Shown here: one piece after another, positions 1 through 10,097 of the stretch
How positions within the stretch are numbered: the stretch's first letter is position 1
Layout: each line of letters begins with the position of its first letter
Assembly: GCF_000143415.4 (NCBI RefSeq)
Contig: NW_003314597.1
Coordinates: 1-10,097 of the forward strand
Direction: 5' to 3'
DNA length: 10,097 bases
DNA from: Selaginella moellendorffii
Lineage: Eukaryota; Plantae; Lycopodiophyta
Position numbers and translations under genes: made by a program
Notes under the pieces: model-generated
Told to the model about the DNA's origin: nothing
The model's database searches: none
Seen by the model: the letters and a program-made list of their open reading frames with translations, nothing else

Positions 1-671
1 ATGGCGACGTCGTTCCATGTCACCTCGTTTTTGGTCCGCATCACATCAAACACAGCCTTGGCCTCTCCAATATTTCCACATTTTCCATACATGTCGACCA
101 GCGCAGTTCCCACTCGAACGTCACAAAGAATGAAAGTGGAATCAATGCTCTTGTGAACACTCTTGCCTTGTTCTAAGGCATTGCAACTGGAGAATCCATC
201 CAGAATGCTAATCAGCGTAATTTCATTTGGTCGAATCCCTTCCTGATCCATGAGCTTGAATATGCAAAATGCTTCTTTGGAATTCCCAGCTTGAGAGTAT
301 GCAGAAATCATTGAGTTCCATGAAACAACATTCTTGAGTGTCGAGGGCATTTTGTCAAAGATATCTCTCGCCTCGCGGATATGCCCGTTCTGGGCATATG
401 CGGCAAGCATGATAGTCCAGGAGAAAACGTTCCTCTTAGAGATTGAATCGAAGACGTTTTTAGCATCGCTGATGCTGTTGCACTTCCCGTACATGCGTAT
501 AAGAAGGTTGGCAAAGAATGAATCGGATTGAGAAAGATATCCTGCCTCCAGAAGGCTTTGGTGGAGTTTCCTGCCTGTTGTGATTGACTTGCACTGACTG
601 AGCAAAGCTTCATATGATCTTTTCTCAGTTTTCTCATGACAAACATCCACAAGGTTATTCCTCGATAGCAT
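1..671 (-). CDS. PLS-class pentatricopeptide repeat (PPR) protein, copy A; only the 5' part is in the window
   Basis: ATG at 671-669 (MLSRNNLV...) opens a stop-free frame that runs off the left edge, so it is absent from the ORF track. It encodes L-S-SS-P-L-S motifs and the start of a P motif (e.g. NLLIRMYGKC, VVSWNSMISAYSQAG, TALVDMYGKCG). About 98% identical to 7689..8348. Confidence 0.9.
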   Translation of the reverse strand, partial: MLSRNNLVDVCHEKTEKRSYEALLSQCKSITTGRKLHQSLLEAGYLSQSDSFFANLLIRMYGKCNSISDAKNVFDSISKRNVFSWTIMLAAYAQNGHIREARDIFDKMPSTLKNVVSWNSMISAYSQAGNSKEAFCIFKLMDQEGIRPNEITLISILDGFSSCNALEQGKSVHKSIDSTFILCDVRVGTALVDMYGKCGNIGEAKAVFDVMRTKNEVTWNDVA

Positions 672-963
672 CCAACGGTTACCCCTTTTGAATTAAGAGT
701 TTTGATTTAATATTTTTAATCTAGTAGGAGCTGTGCATCCAGGGTGAAGCATATCTGCGGTTGTTACTCTTGAATAGAGTACTTAGAAGCTAATGCTTCT
801 GATGGATCTTACTGCAAATGCAATGTTACACAGTTGTAGTACCCTTGCAGTGAAAGTCTTTTGACAATTTAGCTGTGGTGGCAAATTCTCAAACAGGCAA
901 TGGTCAATCCTTCCTCGTTAAGGTTTCTACGAGCTTGCATAAATTTTTGTGCAAAGATGATTG

Positions 964-976
964 TATATATATATAT
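964..976. repeat. Short (TA)n microsatellite; the paralogous copy is at 8637..8651
   Basis: tatatatatatat is read directly. It lies inside a candidate 62-nt plus-strand intron (923..984). Confidence 0.6.
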
Positions 977-1519
977 GCTTGCAGACGCTCTTGTGGCTGA
1001 AATACTCGGCTGGCATCCTTGGTTGGCTGTGGCAGTTCTCACAGTATGTAGGTTCCAAGCTGCAACATGCTTGAGCAGCGAATTTGTCTTTCAAAATTGG
1101 ATAGAAAACCTCTTGAATACTGTATATGTGCCATGGATCTTCCATTAAAAGGATCCTGCCTTTCTCCATTTGCAATTCCCTTTGTTATATGAAACAACTT
1201 TTGATGATCTGCAGACATCATAAAAATAATTCTTCTAATCTTAACCACCTGATTAAGAAACCACACCATCCCTATCAGATTAAAATCATGTGCACAATCT
1301 CCTCTGGCCAACCATATTTTGCAGCTGCACCATGATAACACTCTTAAGAAGTCTCACCTCTTTTGTTTGTGGCAACAGCAATACTAAATGCTCACTCTAA
1401 CAAACATAAGAGAGATACTGTGGTTTGTAGAACTTGCAAGTTACTATTAAAGGTTTATTGAGGGATTTGCTAGGGGTTCAAAATGTATAGTAAGGATAAT
1501 GAGTAGATTAGATATAATT

Positions 1520-2870
1520 TACCAATTTAAGGCATTATATAACTTCTTGTTAAAAAATTTAGTAGTTGATAGAGTACGTATATTTTCATGTTATGTTGAA
1601 ATACCATTAACCTTCATTTGGCTTTATTTTGTGTACTAATTTTAGTATTAAAATGCTAGAAGCTTTAGGATTATTCCAATGTTGCATCACACTTTTGTTT
1701 TTTTGCTCTTTGGTTGTATACATGTTTTGTACCTTCACTCTTTAGTTATACACTCAGGAGTTTGGCTCTATCCCAGCTTAAGGCTTTAAAACTCAAATTT
1801 TACTTTGTTGTCCTGTATTACATTAAAGTGAATTGCAAACAAGCCAACATTTTGTTGAAAAGTTTCTAAAGTAGATGATAGAAAAATATAACTTTGAGTT
1901 TCAGCATAAAAATACATTTAAGATTGGCTAAAGCTTTGGATTATAAAATACTTCTAGAGCAAGAAGAGATCAAAAGAAAAAAATGATGAAGTCTTAACAA
2001 TGAGTGTTGATATGGAAGAATATTGAGATATTTATAACTTTTTGGAAACAATGAATTTTTTAAAAGGTTGAAAATGTGCTAAGAGGAAGATCATATATAA
2101 ATCAAAACCATTCACACTAATAAGTGATTAACTTTATTGAGTTGGACGAGATAACATACTTCAAATAACAATTAAACAGAATGAACAAAAGGAAATCATG
2201 AGGCATTGCCATAAAAAATATTATAGTGAACACTCCTGTAATTATATAGCTAAGAAAATTGTGAATGCAAAATTTTTAGCTAACATTATTTTAGAACATG
2301 AATTAATATATTTGTCAGGTATTTGGAAGAAGAATCCTTCAGTTCAACTAGAAGGTCTTCATTCAATTTTGTTGATAATACCATTTGAAAAATGGGGGAT
2401 AGATTCCAATTCTTATAGTGGCCACATTAAAAGAAGCCTTATCTCAAAGGTAATAGACTACTTTATTAAGTGGGTTAAAATAATAGCAATTAAAACCAAC
2501 ATAAAAGGAAGTTATGATAAACTTTCTTGTCCAAAATGTATGCATAGCGTTTGGTTACCTGTTAGAGATTGTTATTGACCAAAACTCATATTTATTCAAT
2601 AAAGTAGTTAAAAAAACTAATGAGGAAGCTATTGATTAAATATCAATAGTCAATATCATATTATTCACAAGCTAATTGGTTGGTGGAAAGAATAAATAAT
2701 GTATTGTGCAATATTCTAGAAAAATTGATTATTAAAAAAAGAAAAATTGGTACAAAATGGTTGTTATATCATTATAAGTTTACAAAACCACACACAAAGT
2801 AATAACAAAGTTCACTTCTTTTCAATTAATTTCTAGGACATAAATATACTTTCAATTGAATTGCAAGAAG
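1520..2870 (+). mobile_element. Degenerate Ty3/Gypsy LTR-retrotransposon pol fragment (RT-linked RNase H followed by integrase)
   Basis: Translating across stops and frameshifts gives the RNase H end (..EKYNFEFQHK) and the integrase Zn-binding region (LY*VGRDNIL..EIMRHCH..EH..AKKIVNA..ICQ). The core reads PFEKWGID (D at 2402), IDYFIKWV, EIVIDQ (D at 2577), YYSQANWLVER (E at 2686), with D-35-E spacing after one extra A in the run at 2610-2616, then YKTTHK..FTSFQL..IEL. The RNase H-then-integrase order is diagnostic of Ty3/Gypsy. No LTR was seen and boundaries are approximate. Confidence 0.88.
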
Positions 2871-3709
2871 AGTATGATTCTATAAAAAATAAACTTGATA
2901 ATTTTTGTAGTACCAAATAGTAGTGGTGATCTTTGGAAGCTAGCTGAGTGAGCTTTAATTTCAAGTCCTTTTTATCACTTAGTTTATGCTTCAGCTCTAA
3001 TCATAAACTTGGGATTTCCAACTCTTAGAGCTCCTTGGATTTTAAAACAAAAAGACACACCAAAACCAAGAATCCCTACAAAATGTGCAAGTCCACATCC
3101 TATATTGGTGATTAACTCTTTGATCAAGTATTATAAATTGCTACAACAGCTCTACACTTTTTTATAAAATTGTAATCAAATTTTGACCAAGTCATGGTAA
3201 TTACTGATGACATGTGAAATAATATCAAATGACATCCTACACTCTCTAAATAAGTATTAGAGTAACTTTGATCCATGCCTTCATATAAAACACCACTATA
3301 ACACCAAGTAAAACAAGAAAATTAATAAACTTTATAGAATGGTGGAAAAAGCTATTTAAATTTTAAAAATACCATTTGAATTTTTCTTATATTATTGTGC
3401 TCTAAATTCCAATATTTTATATTTTAAAGAACTTACTAACTAGATCCCTCCCTAAACCTTATAATTACAGTCTCACACAAATATTCTAGAAACAGTTTAT
3501 ATTTAAAACTTTCTATCTTGCACTAGAAGGTGGATGGTGTAATTTATATTAAATTTTCAATTTCAATTTAATATGAACAAAGCATAAGAGGTTATTACAT
3601 TTCCTCACCAAATAAAGTAATAAAAATATATACTTTGGCTTGTTTTAATCTGTTCAGGAAAAGTGAAACTAGTGGAATACCACCTGGCAGTGAAGAATCC
3701 TAGCAAAGA

Positions 3710-5521
3710 ATGGCGATGGCGGCGGCGTCTAGCGCCTCCGACTCCGATCTTGCCTTCCAAATGTCGGTGGGCGATGCCCTCGTTGTAGTTGTTCTCCATT
3801 GCTTGCTTCTGTTTGTGTTTGGGCGGATGGTTTCTCGTTGCTTGCACGGCCTAGCTGGATGGAGGAACAAGCTCCTGGGCGTGGAGGGCGACGCGGCGCT
3901 GGCAATTCGCGTCCAGGAGATGGAGCTGGAGGCGCTCCAGAAGCAGGAGAAGGATCGCGAGATAGCGGCCAAGCTGCTCAAAGAGCTGAACGAGAGCGCG
4001 GACCAGCTGCTCCACGACGACGCCATGGTTCACGAGATCGATGAGATGGACGAGAGGGAGTGGGAGGAGAACGGTGACTTGTACGAGCGGCCTTTCCAGT
4101 CGGGGATCACGGGGACGTTCTTCCGGGTTTATTTCAAAGGCTACTCGGTGTCCGAGGGTGGTGTGATTGTTGGTGCCGCTCTTGGTGGATCGATCAGGGA
4201 TTCCAGTGGAAACGAGCTCCTCCAGCTCAAGAGATACGTCGCAACTCCTACCGGGAAGAACGTCGCGCAGTACTATGCTCTCGTTGACGTTCTCAAGTCG
4301 GCTCAGTCCATGGGAGCTCGCAAGATCATTGCTTACACGGACTCTCGCCCTCTCCATAACCAGGTTGGTTGTTCTTCTCTTCTTTCGCCAGCTTTTCCTT
4401 AATTGAAACGCTTTGTTTCTTTTTTCTCACCTAGATCAAGGGATATTGGAGGGTCTCTACGAAGGCTATGAAGGCCGAGTATGACAAGGCAATCGGGCTC
4501 ATCGATAGTTTCGAGTCGTTTGATATCAACCTTGCGCTCCACGGAGAGAACTGGCCAGCAGACAATCTAGCGAAGTCGGTCTCGATCAGCCAGAGGCAAA
4601 ACACGGCTTCCAGCAGCAGGTCCATGTTTCACTGCGTCATTTGCCTCGAGGACGTCCAGGATGCGGACATTTACACTCTCGCCGAGTGCTCTCACAAGTT
4701 TTGCTCATCGTGCGTGAAGCAGCACGTCGAGGCTACAGTGACAACCGGGCGGACTTTCCCGGTGGCTTGCCCGCAAGTCGAGTGCACGAAGAAGTTCACC
4801 GAGGGCGAGTGCAAGAAGCTGCTGTCCGAGGCGGCTCTCAAAGTTTTCATGAAGAAGATAGAGGAGGAGCGCATCCCTGATGCGGAGAGAGTCTACTGCC
4901 CGTATCCAAAGTGCTCGGACTTGATGGATAGAAGGACTTTCCTCGACCCCAACCCCCGGAAGTTGTGTGGAGCTTGCCACAGATACTTCTGCCTCGACTG
5001 CCGAGTTCCCTGGCATACATTCTCGACTTGTGCTGGATACCAGCGGCTGCCTCTCGACTTAAAAGATGCCGCGGACGCAAAGCTCTACAGGCTCGCGGAG
5101 AACCAGAACTGGAGGCAGTGCAAGAAGTGTAGGTGGATGATTGAGCTCTCGGAAGGGTGCTACCACATGACTTGCAGGTATGATTTTTCTGCCTCGTTCT
5201 TTTTCTTGTGTACGATACTTGGTGTTCTGGTGCTATAGGTGTGGCTACGAGTTTTGTTATACTTGTGGCATGGAGTACCGGAATAAGATACAAATGTGCA
5301 CCTGTAAGCTTTGGGACGAACACTACATTGTTAGAGAGGAAGAAGATTTCTCGGACGATGGAAGCAGCAGTGACGAAATGGATCTTCATGACCCGTTCTA
5401 CAAGACACGGCTCTGTAGATACTTCGCCAAGGGGCACTGTCGTAATGGAGTCAACTGCAGGTTTGCTCACGGTATTCCCGAGCTTGTTCATGTGTTTGTT
5501 TCCAGGTTGGCAATTAACTAA
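3710..5521 (+). CDS. RBR (RING-IBR-RING) E3 ubiquitin ligase of RSL1/RFA-like type with an RNase H-like domain and a C-terminal CCCH zinc finger; join(3710..4363,4435..5177,5239..5521), about 559 aa
   Basis: Splicing joins three ORF-track fragments in frame and restores motifs (HNQ|IKGYWRV; MTCR|CGYEFCYTCG). RNase H-like fold about 4118-4580. RING1 CVIC..CSHKFCSSC..CPQVEC at 4633-4785. IBR CPYPKC..CGACHRYFCLDCRVPWH..C at 4897-5031. RING2 CKKC..GCYHMTCRCGYEFCYTC from 5119, with the putative catalytic Cys at 5158-5160. CCCH YKTRLCRYFAKGHCRNGVNCRFAHG at 5399-5473. The N-terminal exon structure is uncertain. Confidence 0.9.
4364..4434 (+). other. Spliceosomal intron, 71 nt, phase 0, in the RBR gene
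   Basis: CAG|GTTGGT...TTTTTTCTCACCTAG|ATC. It is T-rich and contains an in-frame stop. Removal restores the RNase H motif NQIKGYW. Confidence 0.92.
5178..5238 (+). other. Spliceosomal intron, 61 nt, phase 2, in the RBR gene
   Basis: GCAG|GTATGA...GCTATAG|GTGT. Removal restores RING2 C-R-C-G-Y-E-F-C. Confidence 0.93.
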
Positions 5522-5650
5522 TTCAATGTTTAATTTCTAATATGAAAAACTTGACATTAAGTTAACATTGAACATATCATGATCACAAAGTTAGTATTTA
5601 AAATATGCTTGGATATTCTAAAGTATCCTTCCAACCTTTGTTATTTATTT

Positions 5651-5770
5651 AGATTAATCTTGTATTTATATTTATACACATGTTTATAATTTATAAACTT
5701 TCTTAAACCCTTTCTATGCAATAAGATTAATCTTGTGTTTATAAATTACAAACATGTTTGTAATTATAAA
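5651..5770. repeat. Two imperfect ~47-bp direct repeats (period 73); the second contains a perfect 22-bp palindrome
   Basis: agattaatcttgt..ttata..acatgttt.taatt.ataaa starts at 5651 and 5724. aattacaaacatgtttgtaatt at 5744-5765 is self-complementary. Confidence 0.75.
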
Positions 5771-6638
5771 TTTTATTTGATCAATTGGATTAATAAGTAA
5801 GAATAACACTATGGTTGTGATTTTCCCATATTATATATAATCAGGGTTTAAACTTTGAACTAGTTAAACACTATTTACACCTATACTTAATATCTTTAAA
5901 AAACCATATCTGTGTTTAATAATAAAAGAGAATTAATCTAAATGAGATGGTAAAATATCTGGGTATATTCTAGCAATATCCACTACCACAAAGGTTTTTT
6001 TAAGTAAATAAATTGCTATGCATTACATGTAGCAATGCTTAGTTTGCTTAATAGTAGGGGATGCACAGGCACAAGAGATCTCCAGACCAGGAGAAAAATC
6101 TATGGCAATGCTTTTGTCCATGGGCCTGTTGATTGAGAAATATCCTAGAATATACTTGGATATTCCAGCTCCAATATATTTAAGAGTATTCATCGTAATA
6201 TTCATAAAATGATCAAAATATTGTACAATGTAGAGTAAAACTATATTTTATAGGATTGACGGAATATATTTTTACTAAAACACTAAGGTTACTCAAGACA
6301 TGGATTTATATTAATCTTCATATACAGGGGAAAGTCTCCAAGTATTAATAAAAGAACCATTAAATTATTAGAAATATATAATGCATCTGTTCTCTAGGAT
6401 GCACAAGAAAGAAATATATTTTTTGGTACTAGATCAAAATATTAATACAATTTTCATATATAGTAAAATTGAGAAACAAATCTAACACTAATCCAGGCTA
6501 AACTAAATACTCTAAAAAAATTGACATATTCCGTAAATAAACACAACTTTATTTATGATTATACATATTTAAATTATTATTATTGAAATATCAATTGAAA
6601 CTAAGACCTACAATTGTTACATTACATTTTGAGTTTTT

Positions 6639-6894
6639 ATAAAGTACAAAACTGAAATCATCTTGTAAAACAAGATAATATTGACCATTATCTATTGGTT
6701 TTTAATGTTGATATTCCAGAAAGATATGGTCCCGTTTAAAGGCATGATCTAAAAGGCCAACAATCAGGTCCAGAATAACCATCATCATTTTGATACAAAA
6801 CCAACTTGAATATTTTGAAACATTAAACATGTATACTTGGATTTGAAATTCCTTATTACTAATTGAATATTGTGTTATTTCTACTGTACCATAA
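6639..6894 (-). pseudogene. Degenerate bulb-type (GNA / B-lectin) mannose-binding lectin-like fragment
   Basis: The minus strand reads DNGQYYLVLQDDFSFVLY (6692-6639), matching the B-lectin strand G-x-Y-x-L-V-L-Q-x-D-x-N-x-V-x-Y with N replaced by S (AGT). It is preceded by FWNINIK. A second, frameshifted unit reads LWYS...CLMFQN/FKLVLY (6894-6793). Several stops and frameshifts are present. Confidence 0.55.
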
Positions 6895-8348
6895 TTACTA
6901 GTCGCTCTGCATGGAAGCCAAGAAAACATCGCTCTGGAGAGCTTGCCTGCATAGCTGCAAGCAGAGAGAACGTTTGTGAAAGTTATTGCATTGGGTGGTA
7001 TGCCCTCTAGGTTCATTCTCAAGAACAAGTCTAAAGTGTCGTGGATCTGCCCGTGGCGGACATAGGCTGTGAGAATCCCATTCCACGACACTTTATCCCT
7101 TGATCTCATGTCCTCGAAGATCTTTCTCGCTTCTCTGAGATGACCACACTGTCCATACATGTGAACCAGCGCATTTTGGATCTTGGTGCTAAGATAATAT
7201 TTATAGTCACTTAGCAAGCTCGCGTGAACGAGTTTTCCTTCGTCCACAGCGAGGACACTCCCACAAGCGTCGAGAGCACTGATGAAACAAGCCTCGTCCA
7301 GTGTAAATCCCTCCAGGTCCATGCAAACGAAAACTCGAAACCCTTCCTTGCCATGCCCGCTCTGGACATATGCGACTAGTAGAGCAGTCCACAAAACAAC
7401 GTCTTTGCTTTCAGCACTGTCAAAAATCTCTCTTGCCCGATCAAACTCTCTCGATCTACTGTACATGTTTAGCAGCGAAGTTGCCACCATCAGGTTTGAT
7501 TCGTATCCACTTTGAGCAGCAAAACTGTGAATCAGTCGACCAACCGTTAGATCTCCAGCGTCACCACAAGCTTCCAACACGCTCACAAAGTTAGCGTCGT
7601 CGGGCTTGACACCTTCGACGCTCATGAGCTGGAACAGCCGGATTGCCAAATTGGAATGCCCGTTCTGGGCATATGCAGCCATCATGGCATTCCATGTCAC
7701 CTCGTTTTTTGTCCGCATCGCATCAAACACAGCCTTGGCCTCTCCAATATCTCCACATTTTCCATACATGTCGACCAGCGCAGTTCCCACTCGAACGTCA
7801 CAAAGAATGAAAGTGGAATCAATGCTCTTGTGAACACTCTTGCCTTGTTCTAAGGCATTGCAACTGGAGAATCCATCCAGAATGCTAATCAGAGTAATTT
7901 CATTCGGTCGAATCCCTTCCTGATCCATGAGCTTGAATATGCAAAAGGCTTCTTTGGAATTCCCAGCTTGAGAGTATGCAGAAATCATTGAGTTCCATGA
8001 AACAACATTCTTGAGTGTCGAGGGCATTTTGTCAAAGATATCTCTTGCCTCGCGGATATGCCCGTTCTGGGCATATGCGGCAAGCATGATAGTCCAGGAG
8101 AAAACGTTCCTCTTAGAGATTGAATCGAAGACGTTTTTAGCATCGCTGATGCTGTTGCACTTCCCGTACATGCGTATGAGAAGGTTGGCAAAGAATGAAT
8201 CGGATTGAGAAAGATATCCTGCCTCCAGAAGGCTTTGGTGGAGTTTCCTGCCTGTTGTGATCGACTTGCACTGACTGAGCAAAGCTTCATATGATCTTTT
8301 CTCAGTTTTCTCATGACAAACATCCACAAGGCTATTCCTCGATAGCAT
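6702..8348 (-). CDS. PLS-class PPR protein, copy B; C-terminally frameshifted and truncated with no S2/E/DYW (possible pseudogene)
   Basis: 548-aa ORF with about 14 motifs, L-S-SS-P-L-S-P-L-S-P-L-S-P2-L2. PPR similarity leaves the main frame near 6930 (ACSYAGKLSRA), continues in another frame as FLASMQSD, and stops at 6900-6898. The last ~75 aa of the ORF are non-PPR readthrough into AT-rich DNA. Confidence 0.88.
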   Translation of the reverse strand: MLSRNSLVDVCHEKTEKRSYEALLSQCKSITTGRKLHQSLLEAGYLSQSDSFFANLLIRMYGKCNSISDAKNVFDSISKRNVFSWTIMLAAYAQNGHIREARDIFDKMPSTLKNVVSWNSMISAYSQAGNSKEAFCIFKLMDQEGIRPNEITLISILDGFSSCNALEQGKSVHKSIDSTFILCDVRVGTALVDMYGKCGDIGEAKAVFDAMRTKNEVTWNAMMAAYAQNGHSNLAIRLFQLMSVEGVKPDDANFVSVLEACGDAGDLTVGRLIHSFAAQSGYESNLMVATSLLNMYSRSREFDRAREIFDSAESKDVVLWTALLVAYVQSGHGKEGFRVFVCMDLEGFTLDEACFISALDACGSVLAVDEGKLVHASLLSDYKYYLSTKIQNALVHMYGQCGHLREARKIFEDMRSRDKVSWNGILTAYVRHGQIHDTLDLFLRMNLEGIPPNAITFTNVLSACSYAGKLSRAMFSWLPCRATSNYGTVEITQYSISNKEFQIQVYMFNVSKYSSWFCIKMMMVILDLIVGLLDHAFKRDHIFLEYQH

Positions 8349-10097
8349 CCAACGGTTACCCCTTTTGAATTAAGAGTTTTGATCTAATATTTTTAATCTA
8401 GTAGGAGCTGTGCATCCAGGGTGAAGCATATCTGCGGTTGCTACTCTTGAATAGAATACTTAGAAGCTAATGCTTCTGATGGATCTTACTGCAAATGTAA
8501 TGTTATCCCTTGCAGTGAAAGTCAATACAAACCTTTTGACAATTTAGCTGTGGTGGCAAATTCTCAAACAGGCAATGGTCAATCCTTCCTCGTTAAGGTT
8601 TCTACGAGCTTGCATAAATTTTTGTGCAAAGATGATTATATATATATATATGCTTGCAGACGCTCTTGTGGCTGAAATACTCGGCTGGCATCCTTGGTTT
8701 GCTGTGGCAGTTCTCACAGTATGTAGGTTCCAAGCTGCAACATGCTTGAGCAGCGAATTTGTCTTTCAAAATTGGATAGAAAACCTCTTGAATACTGCAT
8801 ATGTGCCATGGATCTTCCATTAAAAGGATCCTGCCTTTCTCCATTTGCAATTCCCTTTGTAATATGAAACAACTTTTGATGATCTGCAGACATCATTAAA
8901 ATAATTCTTCTACTCTTAACCACCTGATCATTCATCTGATGTGTCTCACATAAAAGACATGTGCACAATCTCCTCATATCATTTTGGCCAACCATATTTT
9001 GCAGCTGCACCATGATAACACTCTTAAGAAGTCTCACCTCTTTTGTTTGTGGCAACAGCAATACTAAATGCTCACTCTAACAAACATAAGAGAGATACTG
9101 TGGTTTGTAGAACTTGCAAGTTACTATTAAAGGTTTATTGAGGGATTTGCTAGGGGTTCAAAATGCATAGTAGATATAACTGACCAACTTGAAATTTCTT
9201 GTTAAATGTATTTGTTTTTGTTCTGCATTTGCTTTAATCCCAAGTTTAGTAGTTGGTAGAGTACTTATATTTTTTATGTTATGTTGAAATAGCATTAACC
9301 TTCGTTTAGCATTATTTTGTGTACTAATTTTAATATCAAGATGCTAAAAGCTTTAGAATTGTTCCAATGTTGCACCACTCTGGTGTTTTACACTCAAGAG
9401 TTTTGTTTTGTTTTGGCTTAAAGCTCTAAAACTTAAGTTTTACTTTGTTGCCCTGATAATATTATATTAAAGTGAATTGCAAACAAGCTAACATTTTGTT
9501 GAAAAGTTCCTCAAATAGATGATAATTTTAGCAAAGTATGACTCTGAGTTTAATTTTAAAAAAAACATTTAAGATTGGCTAAAGCTTTGAATTATAAAAT
9601 ACTTCTAGAGCAAGAAGAGATCAAAAGAAAAAGATGATGAAGTCTTAACAATAAGTGTTAATATGGAAAAATATTGAAATATTTATAAGTTTTTAAAATC
9701 AATGAATTTTCTAAAAGGTTGAAAATGTGCTAAGAGGAAGATCATATGTAAGTCAAAACCATTCAGATTAATAAGTGATTAACTTTATTGAGTTGGACGA
9801 GACAACATGCTTCAAATAACAATTAGACAGAACGAACAAAAGGAAATCATGAGGCATTGCTATGAAAGATAATATAGTGAACACTCCTTCTATAATTATA
9901 TAGCTAAGAATGCAAAATTTCTAGCTAACATTATTTTAGAACATGAATTAATGGTAAAGATCATATCATATTTGTCAAGTATTTGGAAGAAGAATCCCTC
10001 AATTCAACTAGAAGGTCTTCATTCAATTTTGTTGACAATACCATTTGAAAAATGGGGGATAGATTCCAATTCTTATAGTGGTATCACATAAAAAAGC
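7684..10097 (+). repeat. Segmental/tandem duplication, copy B (matches 1..2437)
   Basis: Same colinear alignment as copy A. It continues to the right window edge. Confidence 0.97.
9183..10097 (+). mobile_element. Degenerate Ty3/Gypsy pol fragment (RNase H, integrase N-terminus), duplicate copy, cut by the window edge
   Basis: FVLHL..VVGRVLI (FxLxxDAS..VGAVL region), LVFYTQEF, EKFLK*MIILAKYDSEF (GRxxRWxxxLxEYDFE region), LY*VGRDNML..EIMRHC, F*LTLF..SYHICQVFG and PFEKWGID. Confidence 0.85.

Follow-up and report, generated by a model that had tools for sequence, protein, structure and literature searches.

An RSL1-type RBR ubiquitin ligase with an RNase H-like domain and a terminal TTP-like CCCH finger in Selaginella moellendorffii

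Introduction

Plant II, a group within the RING-between-RING (RBR) ubiquitin ligases, was defined as a subfamily by Marin 2010 (PMC2904391), and additional domains of its members were reported as none. Later work described a reverse-transcriptase-like/RNase H domain for LIFERING as well as for the 'RBRE3UT' cluster of RNase H-like proteins. RSL1, RFA1/RFA4 and LIFERING (At5g60250) all combine an N-terminal domain of this kind (Pfam RVT_3) with the RBR core and an acidic tail after RING2. Here, we analyze a gene with the same organization, which is located at positions 3710–5521 of a 10,097-nucleotide (nt) stretch of Selaginella moellendorffii DNA (contig NW_003314597.1, positions 1–10,097 of the forward strand; this whole stretch is referred to as the window). 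The encoded protein additionally ends in a single CCCH zinc finger that resembles those of TTP/ZFP36. It departs from the 'no additional domains' of Marin 2010, as both RVT_3 and the CCCH finger are present; that statement is outdated for RVT_3, and the finger is not covered by it. The functional work on RSL1, RFA1/4 and LIFERING all stems from Arabidopsis, where the finger no longer exists.

Ubiquitin ligases that bind RNA have been treated as a class (PMC5707401). Among them, Roquin-1/2 (RING E3, ROQ domain and one CCCH finger) share with the window protein the combination of an E3 module and a single CCCH finger, and the Roquin finger binds AU-rich single-stranded RNA (ssRNA) at about 14 µM as an auxiliary tether (PMC11381341). 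However, Roquin, Makorin and MEX3 are RING-type E3 ligases and not RBR enzymes with a catalytic cysteine, whereas the window protein possesses neither a ROQ nor a KH domain and shows no sequence kinship to the three outside the finger. A possible analogue of an RNase H-like domain plus finger is Regnase/ZC3H12, whose PIN nuclease fold and single CCCH finger recognize RNA cooperatively (PMC8136824). In contrast to the window protein, with its degenerate RNase H-like domain, Regnase has an active PIN nuclease and no ligase module.

Results and discussion

Domain architecture of the window protein

The gene comprises three exons, which form an uninterrupted frame of 559 codons closed by TAA at 5519–5521 (Table 1). 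On the forward strand of the region 3710–5521, the three open stretches are GC-rich (50–59% GC) and the DNA around them is AT-rich (22–32% GC). Sequence searches were run on the separate exon translations and on a 97%-identical full-length protein, P0001 (542 amino acids (aa)), which had been retrieved with exon 2 from 1.84 billion representative proteins at 96% identity. From M18 on, the spliced window protein differs from P0001 at 16 of 542 positions without gaps (97.0% aa identity). Scaffold GL377585.1 of S. moellendorffii (positions on it are given below as L001) carries two genes in tandem that each encode RVT_3, IBR and zf-CCCH, referred to as copy a (540 aa) and copy b (= P0001); at the DNA level, the window gene shares 94% identity with copy b and 92% with copy a. 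NCBI lists P0001 as 'E3 ubiquitin-protein ligase arih1 [Selaginella moellendorffii]'. This name is a misnomer, because the domains, the names of the matches and the phylogenetic tree described below place P0001 in Plant II (RSL1-like). The best named matches of the window protein itself were RSL1 or RSL1-like, in agreement with its grouping in the tree, and it has the RING2 (Rcat) pattern CxHMxCxCGxxFCxxC in common with the Arabidopsis Plant II RBRs.

Table 1. Coordinates of the RBR-CCCH ligase gene and of its encoded features in the window.
Feature	Position	Strand	Basis
Coding region of the RBR-CCCH ligase, 559 aa (3710–4363 + 4435–5177 + 5239–5521)	3710..5521	+	Open reading frames, splice model, contigs of four runs
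Exon 1, residues 1–218: N-terminal motif, hydrophobic stretch, acidic helical region, first half of RNase H-like domain	3710..4363	+	
Hydrophobic stretch ALVVVVLHCLLLFVFGRMV, Kyte-Doolittle 19-residue mean 2.52	3776..3832	+	Exonised former intron
RNase H-like (RVT_3) domain, residues about 136–278, split by intron 1	4115..4614	+	Pfam, PDB matches, AF2/Foldseek
DEDD equivalents K143, Q187, D211, D261	4136–4138, 4268–4270, 4340–4342, 4561–4563	+	
Intron 1, 71 nt, GT..AG, phase 0	4364..4434	+	Joint 4361>4433 in 4/4 runs
Exon 2, residues 219–465 plus two bases: end of RNase H-like domain, RING1, IBR, first half of RING2	4435..5177	+	
RING1, C285...C335, C3HC4	4633..4785	+	Pfam zf-C3HC4, zf-RING_2
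IBR / BRcat, C373...C417	4897..5031	+	Pfam IBR
RING2 / Rcat, C447...C488, split by intron 2	5119..5305	+	Pfam IBR_1, ARIH1 alignment
Catalytic cysteine codon C460 (EGC-YHM)	5158..5160	+	Alignment to ARIH1 GGC-NHM cysteine
Intron 2, 61 nt, GT..AG, phase 2	5178..5238	+	Joint 5175>5237 in 4/4 runs
Exon 3: end of RING2, acidic linker, CCCH finger, short tail, stop	5239..5521	+	
Acidic linker EEEDFSDDGSSSDEMD	5336..5383	+	Charge, disorder prediction
TTP-like CCCH finger, FYKTRLC-x7-C-x5-C-x3-HGIPEL	5396..5485	+	Pfam zf-CCCH, TTP/TIS11d alignments
Finger ligands C525, C533, C539, H543	5414–5416, 5438–5440, 5456–5458, 5468–5470	+	

Exon 2 yielded Pfam matches to IBR (3.6e-09), zf-C3HC4 (1.3e-06), zf-RING_2 and the start of IBR_1, and its product aligned to human ARIH1 over RING1-IBR-RING2 at 7e-13. 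In a 27-protein family alignment, which underlies all conservation counts given for the core and the RNase H-like domain, the eight C3HC4 ligands of RING1 (C285, C288, C303, H305, C308, C311, C330 and C335) were kept in 26–27 of 27 proteins, and the IBR/BRcat ligands (C373, C378, C396, C399, C404, C407, H412 and C417) were conserved as well. The RING2 ligands (C447, C450, C465, C467, C472, C475, C486 and C488) and the catalytic C460 were invariant (27/27). In the ARIH1 alignment, C460 is in register with the catalytic cysteine (C357) of this Ariadne protein (ARIH1/HHARI). C465, whose codon is the last complete one in exon 2, is instead a zinc ligand. The RBR part of an AlphaFold2 (AF2) model of P0001 matched RNF216, HOIL-1 and ARIH2 in Foldseek. 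Judged by these conserved residues, the RING1-IBR-RING2 core is complete and includes the catalytic cysteine. Unlike the Ariadne RBRs, the window protein lacks an Ariadne domain as well as a UBA-like or acidic/Gly N-terminus; what it has in their stead are the RNase H-like domain and the CCCH finger.

The N-terminal domain was recognized by Pfam as RVT_3 above the cut-off in exon 1 alone (2.6e-05), with a continuation at the start of exon 2, and at 8.6e-13 in full-length P0001. It also aligned to genuine RNase H enzymes, namely the N-domain of Rv2228c, LC11-RNase H1 and Sulfolobus RNase HI (phmmer, 1.3e-04 for 3hst). In the AF2 model (mean predicted local distance difference test (pLDDT) score 82.8), this domain reached a pLDDT >92 and could be superposed on 3hst and 4e19 with template modelling (TM) scores of 0.90 and 0.92, respectively, and a root-mean-square deviation of about 2 Å (Foldseek). 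Two of the four catalytic carboxylates are missing, however, as the DEDD positions are occupied by K, Q, D and D. The first position was never Asp in the 27 family members (K/T/A/R/S/Q), and the fourth (the D134 equivalent) was Asp in Selaginella only. From its residues, the domain, which is basic with an isoelectric point of 9.5, is catalytically dead, and the degenerate DEDD set indicates that the RNase H fold is inactive in the whole family, also in seed plants.

After RING2, a linker follows that is predicted to be disordered (AF2 pLDDT <50 at P0001 478–501) and lies in a region with a net charge of −9 (residues 496–517). The finger behind it forms a separate module modelled with confidence (pLDDT 80–90, net charge +5), which Pfam identified in exon 3 as zf-CCCH (2.7e-10). 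Its closest solved relatives were a C3H1 protein, TTP and TIS11d (ZFP36L2), with values from 5.6e-10 to 2.2e-08. The window sequence FYKTRLC ... CRFAHGIPEL aligned to RYKTELC ... CQFAHGxxEL of TTP/TIS11d, and thus has the (R/K)YKTELC-type lead-in, the C..C..C...H ligand order and the FAHG..EL end of these fingers. The partners differ: the finger of the window protein is fused to an E3 ligase, whereas those of the TTP family are fused to CNOT1-binding regions.

A sequence-only reading of the window had already proposed an N-terminal pseudo-RNase H fold, kinship with RSL1/RFA-type RBRs, intact RING1, IBR and RING2 with their catalytic cysteine, and an acidic linker followed by one C-x7-C-x5-C-x3-H finger with a TTP-like YKTRL lead-in. 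All of these proposals were borne out by the searches, models and alignments described above and by the tree, and the catalytic cysteine could be specified as C460.

Expression of the complete reading frame

A transcript search found the stretch in about 20 sequencing runs from roughly ten studies, and four runs from four studies were used for further analysis. Their contigs span only 3693–5565, and both introns are exactly absent. As the contigs lack the introns and end at the gene borders, we conclude that these runs originated from transcripts; their RNA nature was otherwise presumed. Single contigs join exon 2 (4954–5175) to exon 3, reaching from 5237 to 5565 in run X1 and from 5237 to 5516 in run X2. 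Since intronless contigs of the four runs continue from exon 2 through the stop codon, the finger segment 5399–5473 (YKTRLC...HG, from the start of Y520 to the end of G544) and the stop codon are part of the mRNA; the sequence-only reading, whose coordinates for the finger are exact, had called for this check by RNA-seq. The gene is expressed with the finger, and no splice removes 5399–5473.

Two candidate alternative structures were rejected. A donor-like CAG|GTTGG at 5506 might have led to a further 3′ exon, but a contig continues past it to 5565, and no contig of the four runs covers 5580–6600. Splicing that skips the finger was considered for contigs with loose ends at 5304 (CAACCTCT; runs X7 and X10) and 3853 (X1). 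These ends match copy a letter for letter (L001 1989–2001 and 463–492, respectively) and therefore represent transcripts of the paralogue and not isoforms, which also means that both paralogue types are expressed in the same samples. One contig of run X10 showed a 65-nt skip (4028>4094), whose ends are non-canonical (TT..CT) and which adds one letter; an indel between paralogues or an artefact of the assembly may account for it.

Phylogenetic distribution of the terminal finger

A quick homologue search provided 184 fetched proteins with a recognizable RING2. A CCCH finger after RING2 was present in 21 of these proteins, and in 34 in total once cluster members were added. They belong to lycophytes (Selaginella, Diphasiastrum), ferns (Adiantum nelumboides, A. 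capillus-veneris), mosses (Sphagnum, Ceratodon, Physcomitrium), liverworts (Riccia, Calypogeia) and chlorophytes (Bryopsis, Myrmecia, Chlorella sp. A99 and Volvox, the last with a degenerate finger). The combination of RVT_3, IBR and zf-CCCH was confirmed by Pfam in Bryopsis, Physcomitrium, Ceratodon, Riccia and Calypogeia. In the 34 homologues, the finger was always the last element of the protein, with the consensus [FY]YKTxLC[RK][YFH][WYF]..G.C..G..C.FAHG..ELR; the terminal fingers of Bryopsis and Volvox lack the YKTxLC-type lead-in. In contrast, none of the roughly 100 fetched seed-plant relatives, which were sampled as best-scoring relatives only and included two Ginkgo proteins, Amborella, Nymphaea and many RSL1/RSL1-like proteins, carried a C-terminal CCCH finger. 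The search recovered no streptophyte algae or hornworts. A survey of the poplar CCCH family contains no IBR proteins, which is consistent with a loss of the finger in seed plants.

A tree of 43 proteins was calculated with the tail columns excluded. It separated chlorophytes from land plants (support 99), and all 18 seed-plant sequences formed one clade (support 95). The window protein fell into the land-plant clade (support 99), which also holds the seed-plant proteins named RSL1. Along this tree the finger changes three times, but two of the changes are short or 'partial' gene models inside the moss and fern clades. Rooting on the algae, whose branches are long and which were used without an Ariadne or ARA54 outgroup, makes the finger ancestral, with one loss on the seed-plant stem. 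As a side observation, one angiosperm gene model (P0002 from Bidens hawaiensis, 897 aa) contains two complete RVT_3+RBR units in tandem, which reflects either the fusion of a tandem duplicate or the merging of gene models.

The sequence-only reading knew of no characterized members that end in a CCCH finger, and asked whether the architecture is already common or described. It is common, as the combination is standard in chlorophytes, liverworts, mosses, lycophytes and ferns. However, no paper on a CCCH finger in RBR ligases was found, which is weak evidence of absence as many subscription papers lay outside the search. The window protein does not represent a new system. Such proteins are already in public databases, the finger-bearing form is undescribed in the literature that was searched, and its link to RNA is hypothetical.

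Proposed function of the finger-bearing ligase

We propose that the window protein is an RNA-tethered RBR ligase of the Plant II (RSL1/RFA/LIFERING) type in its ancestral, non-seed-plant form, and estimate the probability of this interpretation at roughly 60%. By analogy with other RBRs, RING1 would recruit a ubiquitin-loaded E2, from which C460 would take over ubiquitin by transthiolation before a lysine of the substrate receives it. Based on Roquin and on the TTP-type lead-in, the CCCH finger would act as a low-affinity (micromolar) tether for ssRNA, probably rich in U or AU. It could thereby place the ligase on messenger ribonucleoproteins (mRNPs) or RNA granules, where RNA-associated proteins would be ubiquitinated. 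Such an RNA-binding ubiquitin ligase would be comparable to Roquin or Makorin. The catalytically dead RNase H-like domain would serve as a binding or regulatory module rather than as a nuclease, and may act together with the finger in contacting nucleic acid, like the PIN domain and the CCCH finger of Regnase. The basic character of both the finger and the RNase H-like domain is in favor of such a role, and the TTP-type lead-in is considered part of the RNA-binding surface (PMC3427045).

Several observations weigh against this proposal. The protein has one finger with C-x7-C spacing and not the tandem pair of C-x8-C fingers found in TTP and TIS11d, and only weak RNA binding is expected from a lone CCCH finger. 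Tight binding by TTP requires two C-x8-C fingers. The window protein also carries Asn535 at the position of the KYG tyrosine, which is an RNA-stacking residue in TIS11d and is variable across the family. Moreover, CCCH fingers can bind proteins or other ligands, too. The paralogue in the window is derived at both ends, with an exonised intron near the N-terminus and ...PELVHVFVSRLAIN in place of the family ending ...ELR. Finally, the characterized relatives act on proteins that are not linked to RNA, as RSL1, RFA1 and RFA4 target abscisic acid (ABA) receptors (PYR/PYL) and LIFERING targets IBR3.

These known targets lead to the alternative that survives best, although we consider it doubtful: the finger might be an element for protein interaction, substrate recruitment or localization in a ligase with the same job as RSL1, RFA and LIFERING in seed plants, where other tails would have replaced it. 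That one of the two stacking aromatics of TIS11d is not conserved would fit this explanation, and so would the fact that seed plants dropped the finger and retained the acidic tail and the remaining protein. However, conservation of the finger from chlorophytes to ferns is highest in YKTxLC and FAHG, which are exactly the segments that contact RNA in TTP-family fingers. Furthermore, the RBR-CCCH fusion is older than the ABA receptors of land plants, and receptor turnover can therefore not have been the ancestral job.

The sequence-only reading had suggested a different role for nucleic acids, namely activation of the ligase by RNA or an RNA:DNA hybrid, for example to survey retroelement or viral intermediates or stalled mRNPs. 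In this model, nucleic acid bound to the CCCH finger and/or the RNase H-like domain would be an allosteric activator that relieves the autoinhibition of the RBR core. RBRs are generally autoinhibited by flanking domains, as in HHARI and Parkin, the core is enclosed by two nucleic-acid-type modules, and the strongly acidic linker before the basic finger could mask the finger or mimic nucleic acid. Nevertheless, we regard this as unlikely. No sign of a contact between finger and core was seen in the structure model, in which the linker is predicted to be disordered and the predicted TM score (pTM) is 0.39. In addition, the carboxylate equivalent to D10 is absent from all 27 family members and the one equivalent to D134 is present only in Selaginella, the seed-plant members without a finger are active ligases on protein substrates, and nothing ties the gene to retroelements. 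An extended version would be that the ancestral Plant II RBR of green plants was a nucleic-acid-gated ligase, in which ssRNA bound by the finger, possibly together with the RNase H-like domain as a reader of hybrids or duplexes, freed the autoinhibited core so that ubiquitination occurred only on RNA, until seed plants rewired the enzyme to protein-only inputs; this scenario is a long shot.

It is highly improbable that an artefact of annotation or read-through explains the finger, or that the window gene is a decaying pseudogene whose architecture is functionless in Selaginella. The exonised intron, the altered C-terminal end and a ratio of nonsynonymous to synonymous substitution rates (dN/dS) of 0.35 versus copy b, with substitutions too few to be decisive, might point in this direction, but the whole open reading frame (ORF) is present in spliced transcripts of four studies, it has stayed intact in the window gene and the two S. 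moellendorffii copies although their DNA has diverged by 6–8%, all zinc ligands and the catalytic cysteine are preserved, and the 42 codons of finger and tail show four synonymous and no nonsynonymous codon changes relative to copy b.

With respect to the proposed RNA-tethered ligase, an ancestral finger that was kept at the C-terminus behind an acidic linker and lost only once, on the seed-plant stem, suggests that the family began as an RNA-linked ligase. If this is true, the RNA-binding ubiquitin ligases, to date mostly RING-type enzymes, would gain a member of the RBR type. The hypothesis of an RNA link is genetically testable in Physcomitrium (XP_024382068.1) or in liverworts.

Paralogues and neighboring genes

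The derived N-terminus of the window protein can be traced by comparison with its paralogues. Copy a begins with the family N-terminal motif (LAFQMQMNEALAAS), which is followed by a spliced phase-1 intron (L001 about 494–568), and ends with ...HGNHELR and the stop codon. The acceptor of this intron corresponds to 3854|3855 in the window. In the window gene and in copy b, the donor has been lost and the former intron (3764–3854) is read through in frame, which gave rise to the hydrophobic stretch ALVVVVLHCLLLFVFGRMV; both of these genes end with ...HGIPELVHVFVSRLAIN and the stop codon. The transcripts keep the former intron, as contigs are unspliced over 3713–3897 and 3794–4020. In-frame GT..AG candidates for an extra intron exist in the T-rich region 3763–3886, but this intron was rejected, as contigs of three runs cross the region unspliced. 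The hydrophobic 19-residue segment could be a membrane anchor.

The family motif has the form SD.DLAF.LQ..EAL.AS (window 3737–3790) and is repeated once about 40–60 residues later; in the window copy, the first of the two motifs is half destroyed (LAFQMSVGDALVVVV). By eye it resembles a ubiquitin-interacting motif, but no Pfam match was obtained for it even at E values up to 10.

The window contains a direct duplication, with 13–2437 occurring again at 7690–10097 (92–99% identity, spacing about 7.65–7.69 kb). It comprises about 1.3 units of a tandem array, and each unit carries an RBR-CCCH gene and a PPR gene. A PPR gene is likewise located between the two S. moellendorffii RBR-CCCH copies (L001: 380–2183, 6042–7760 and 10001–11758). 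The PPR ORF in the window (6702–8348, reverse strand) is intronless, encodes 548 aa (PPR_2, 1.9e-66) and has its 5′ part duplicated at about 13–660. The last ~70 residues of its product are unlike PPR/E/DYW sequence, and the ORF may be truncated or decaying. Adjoining the PPR gene in S. moellendorffii, a short RING2/linker fragment of the RBR gene (…KIQMCTCNLWDD…) was found at L001 5747–5815, which is probably the remnant of another duplication.

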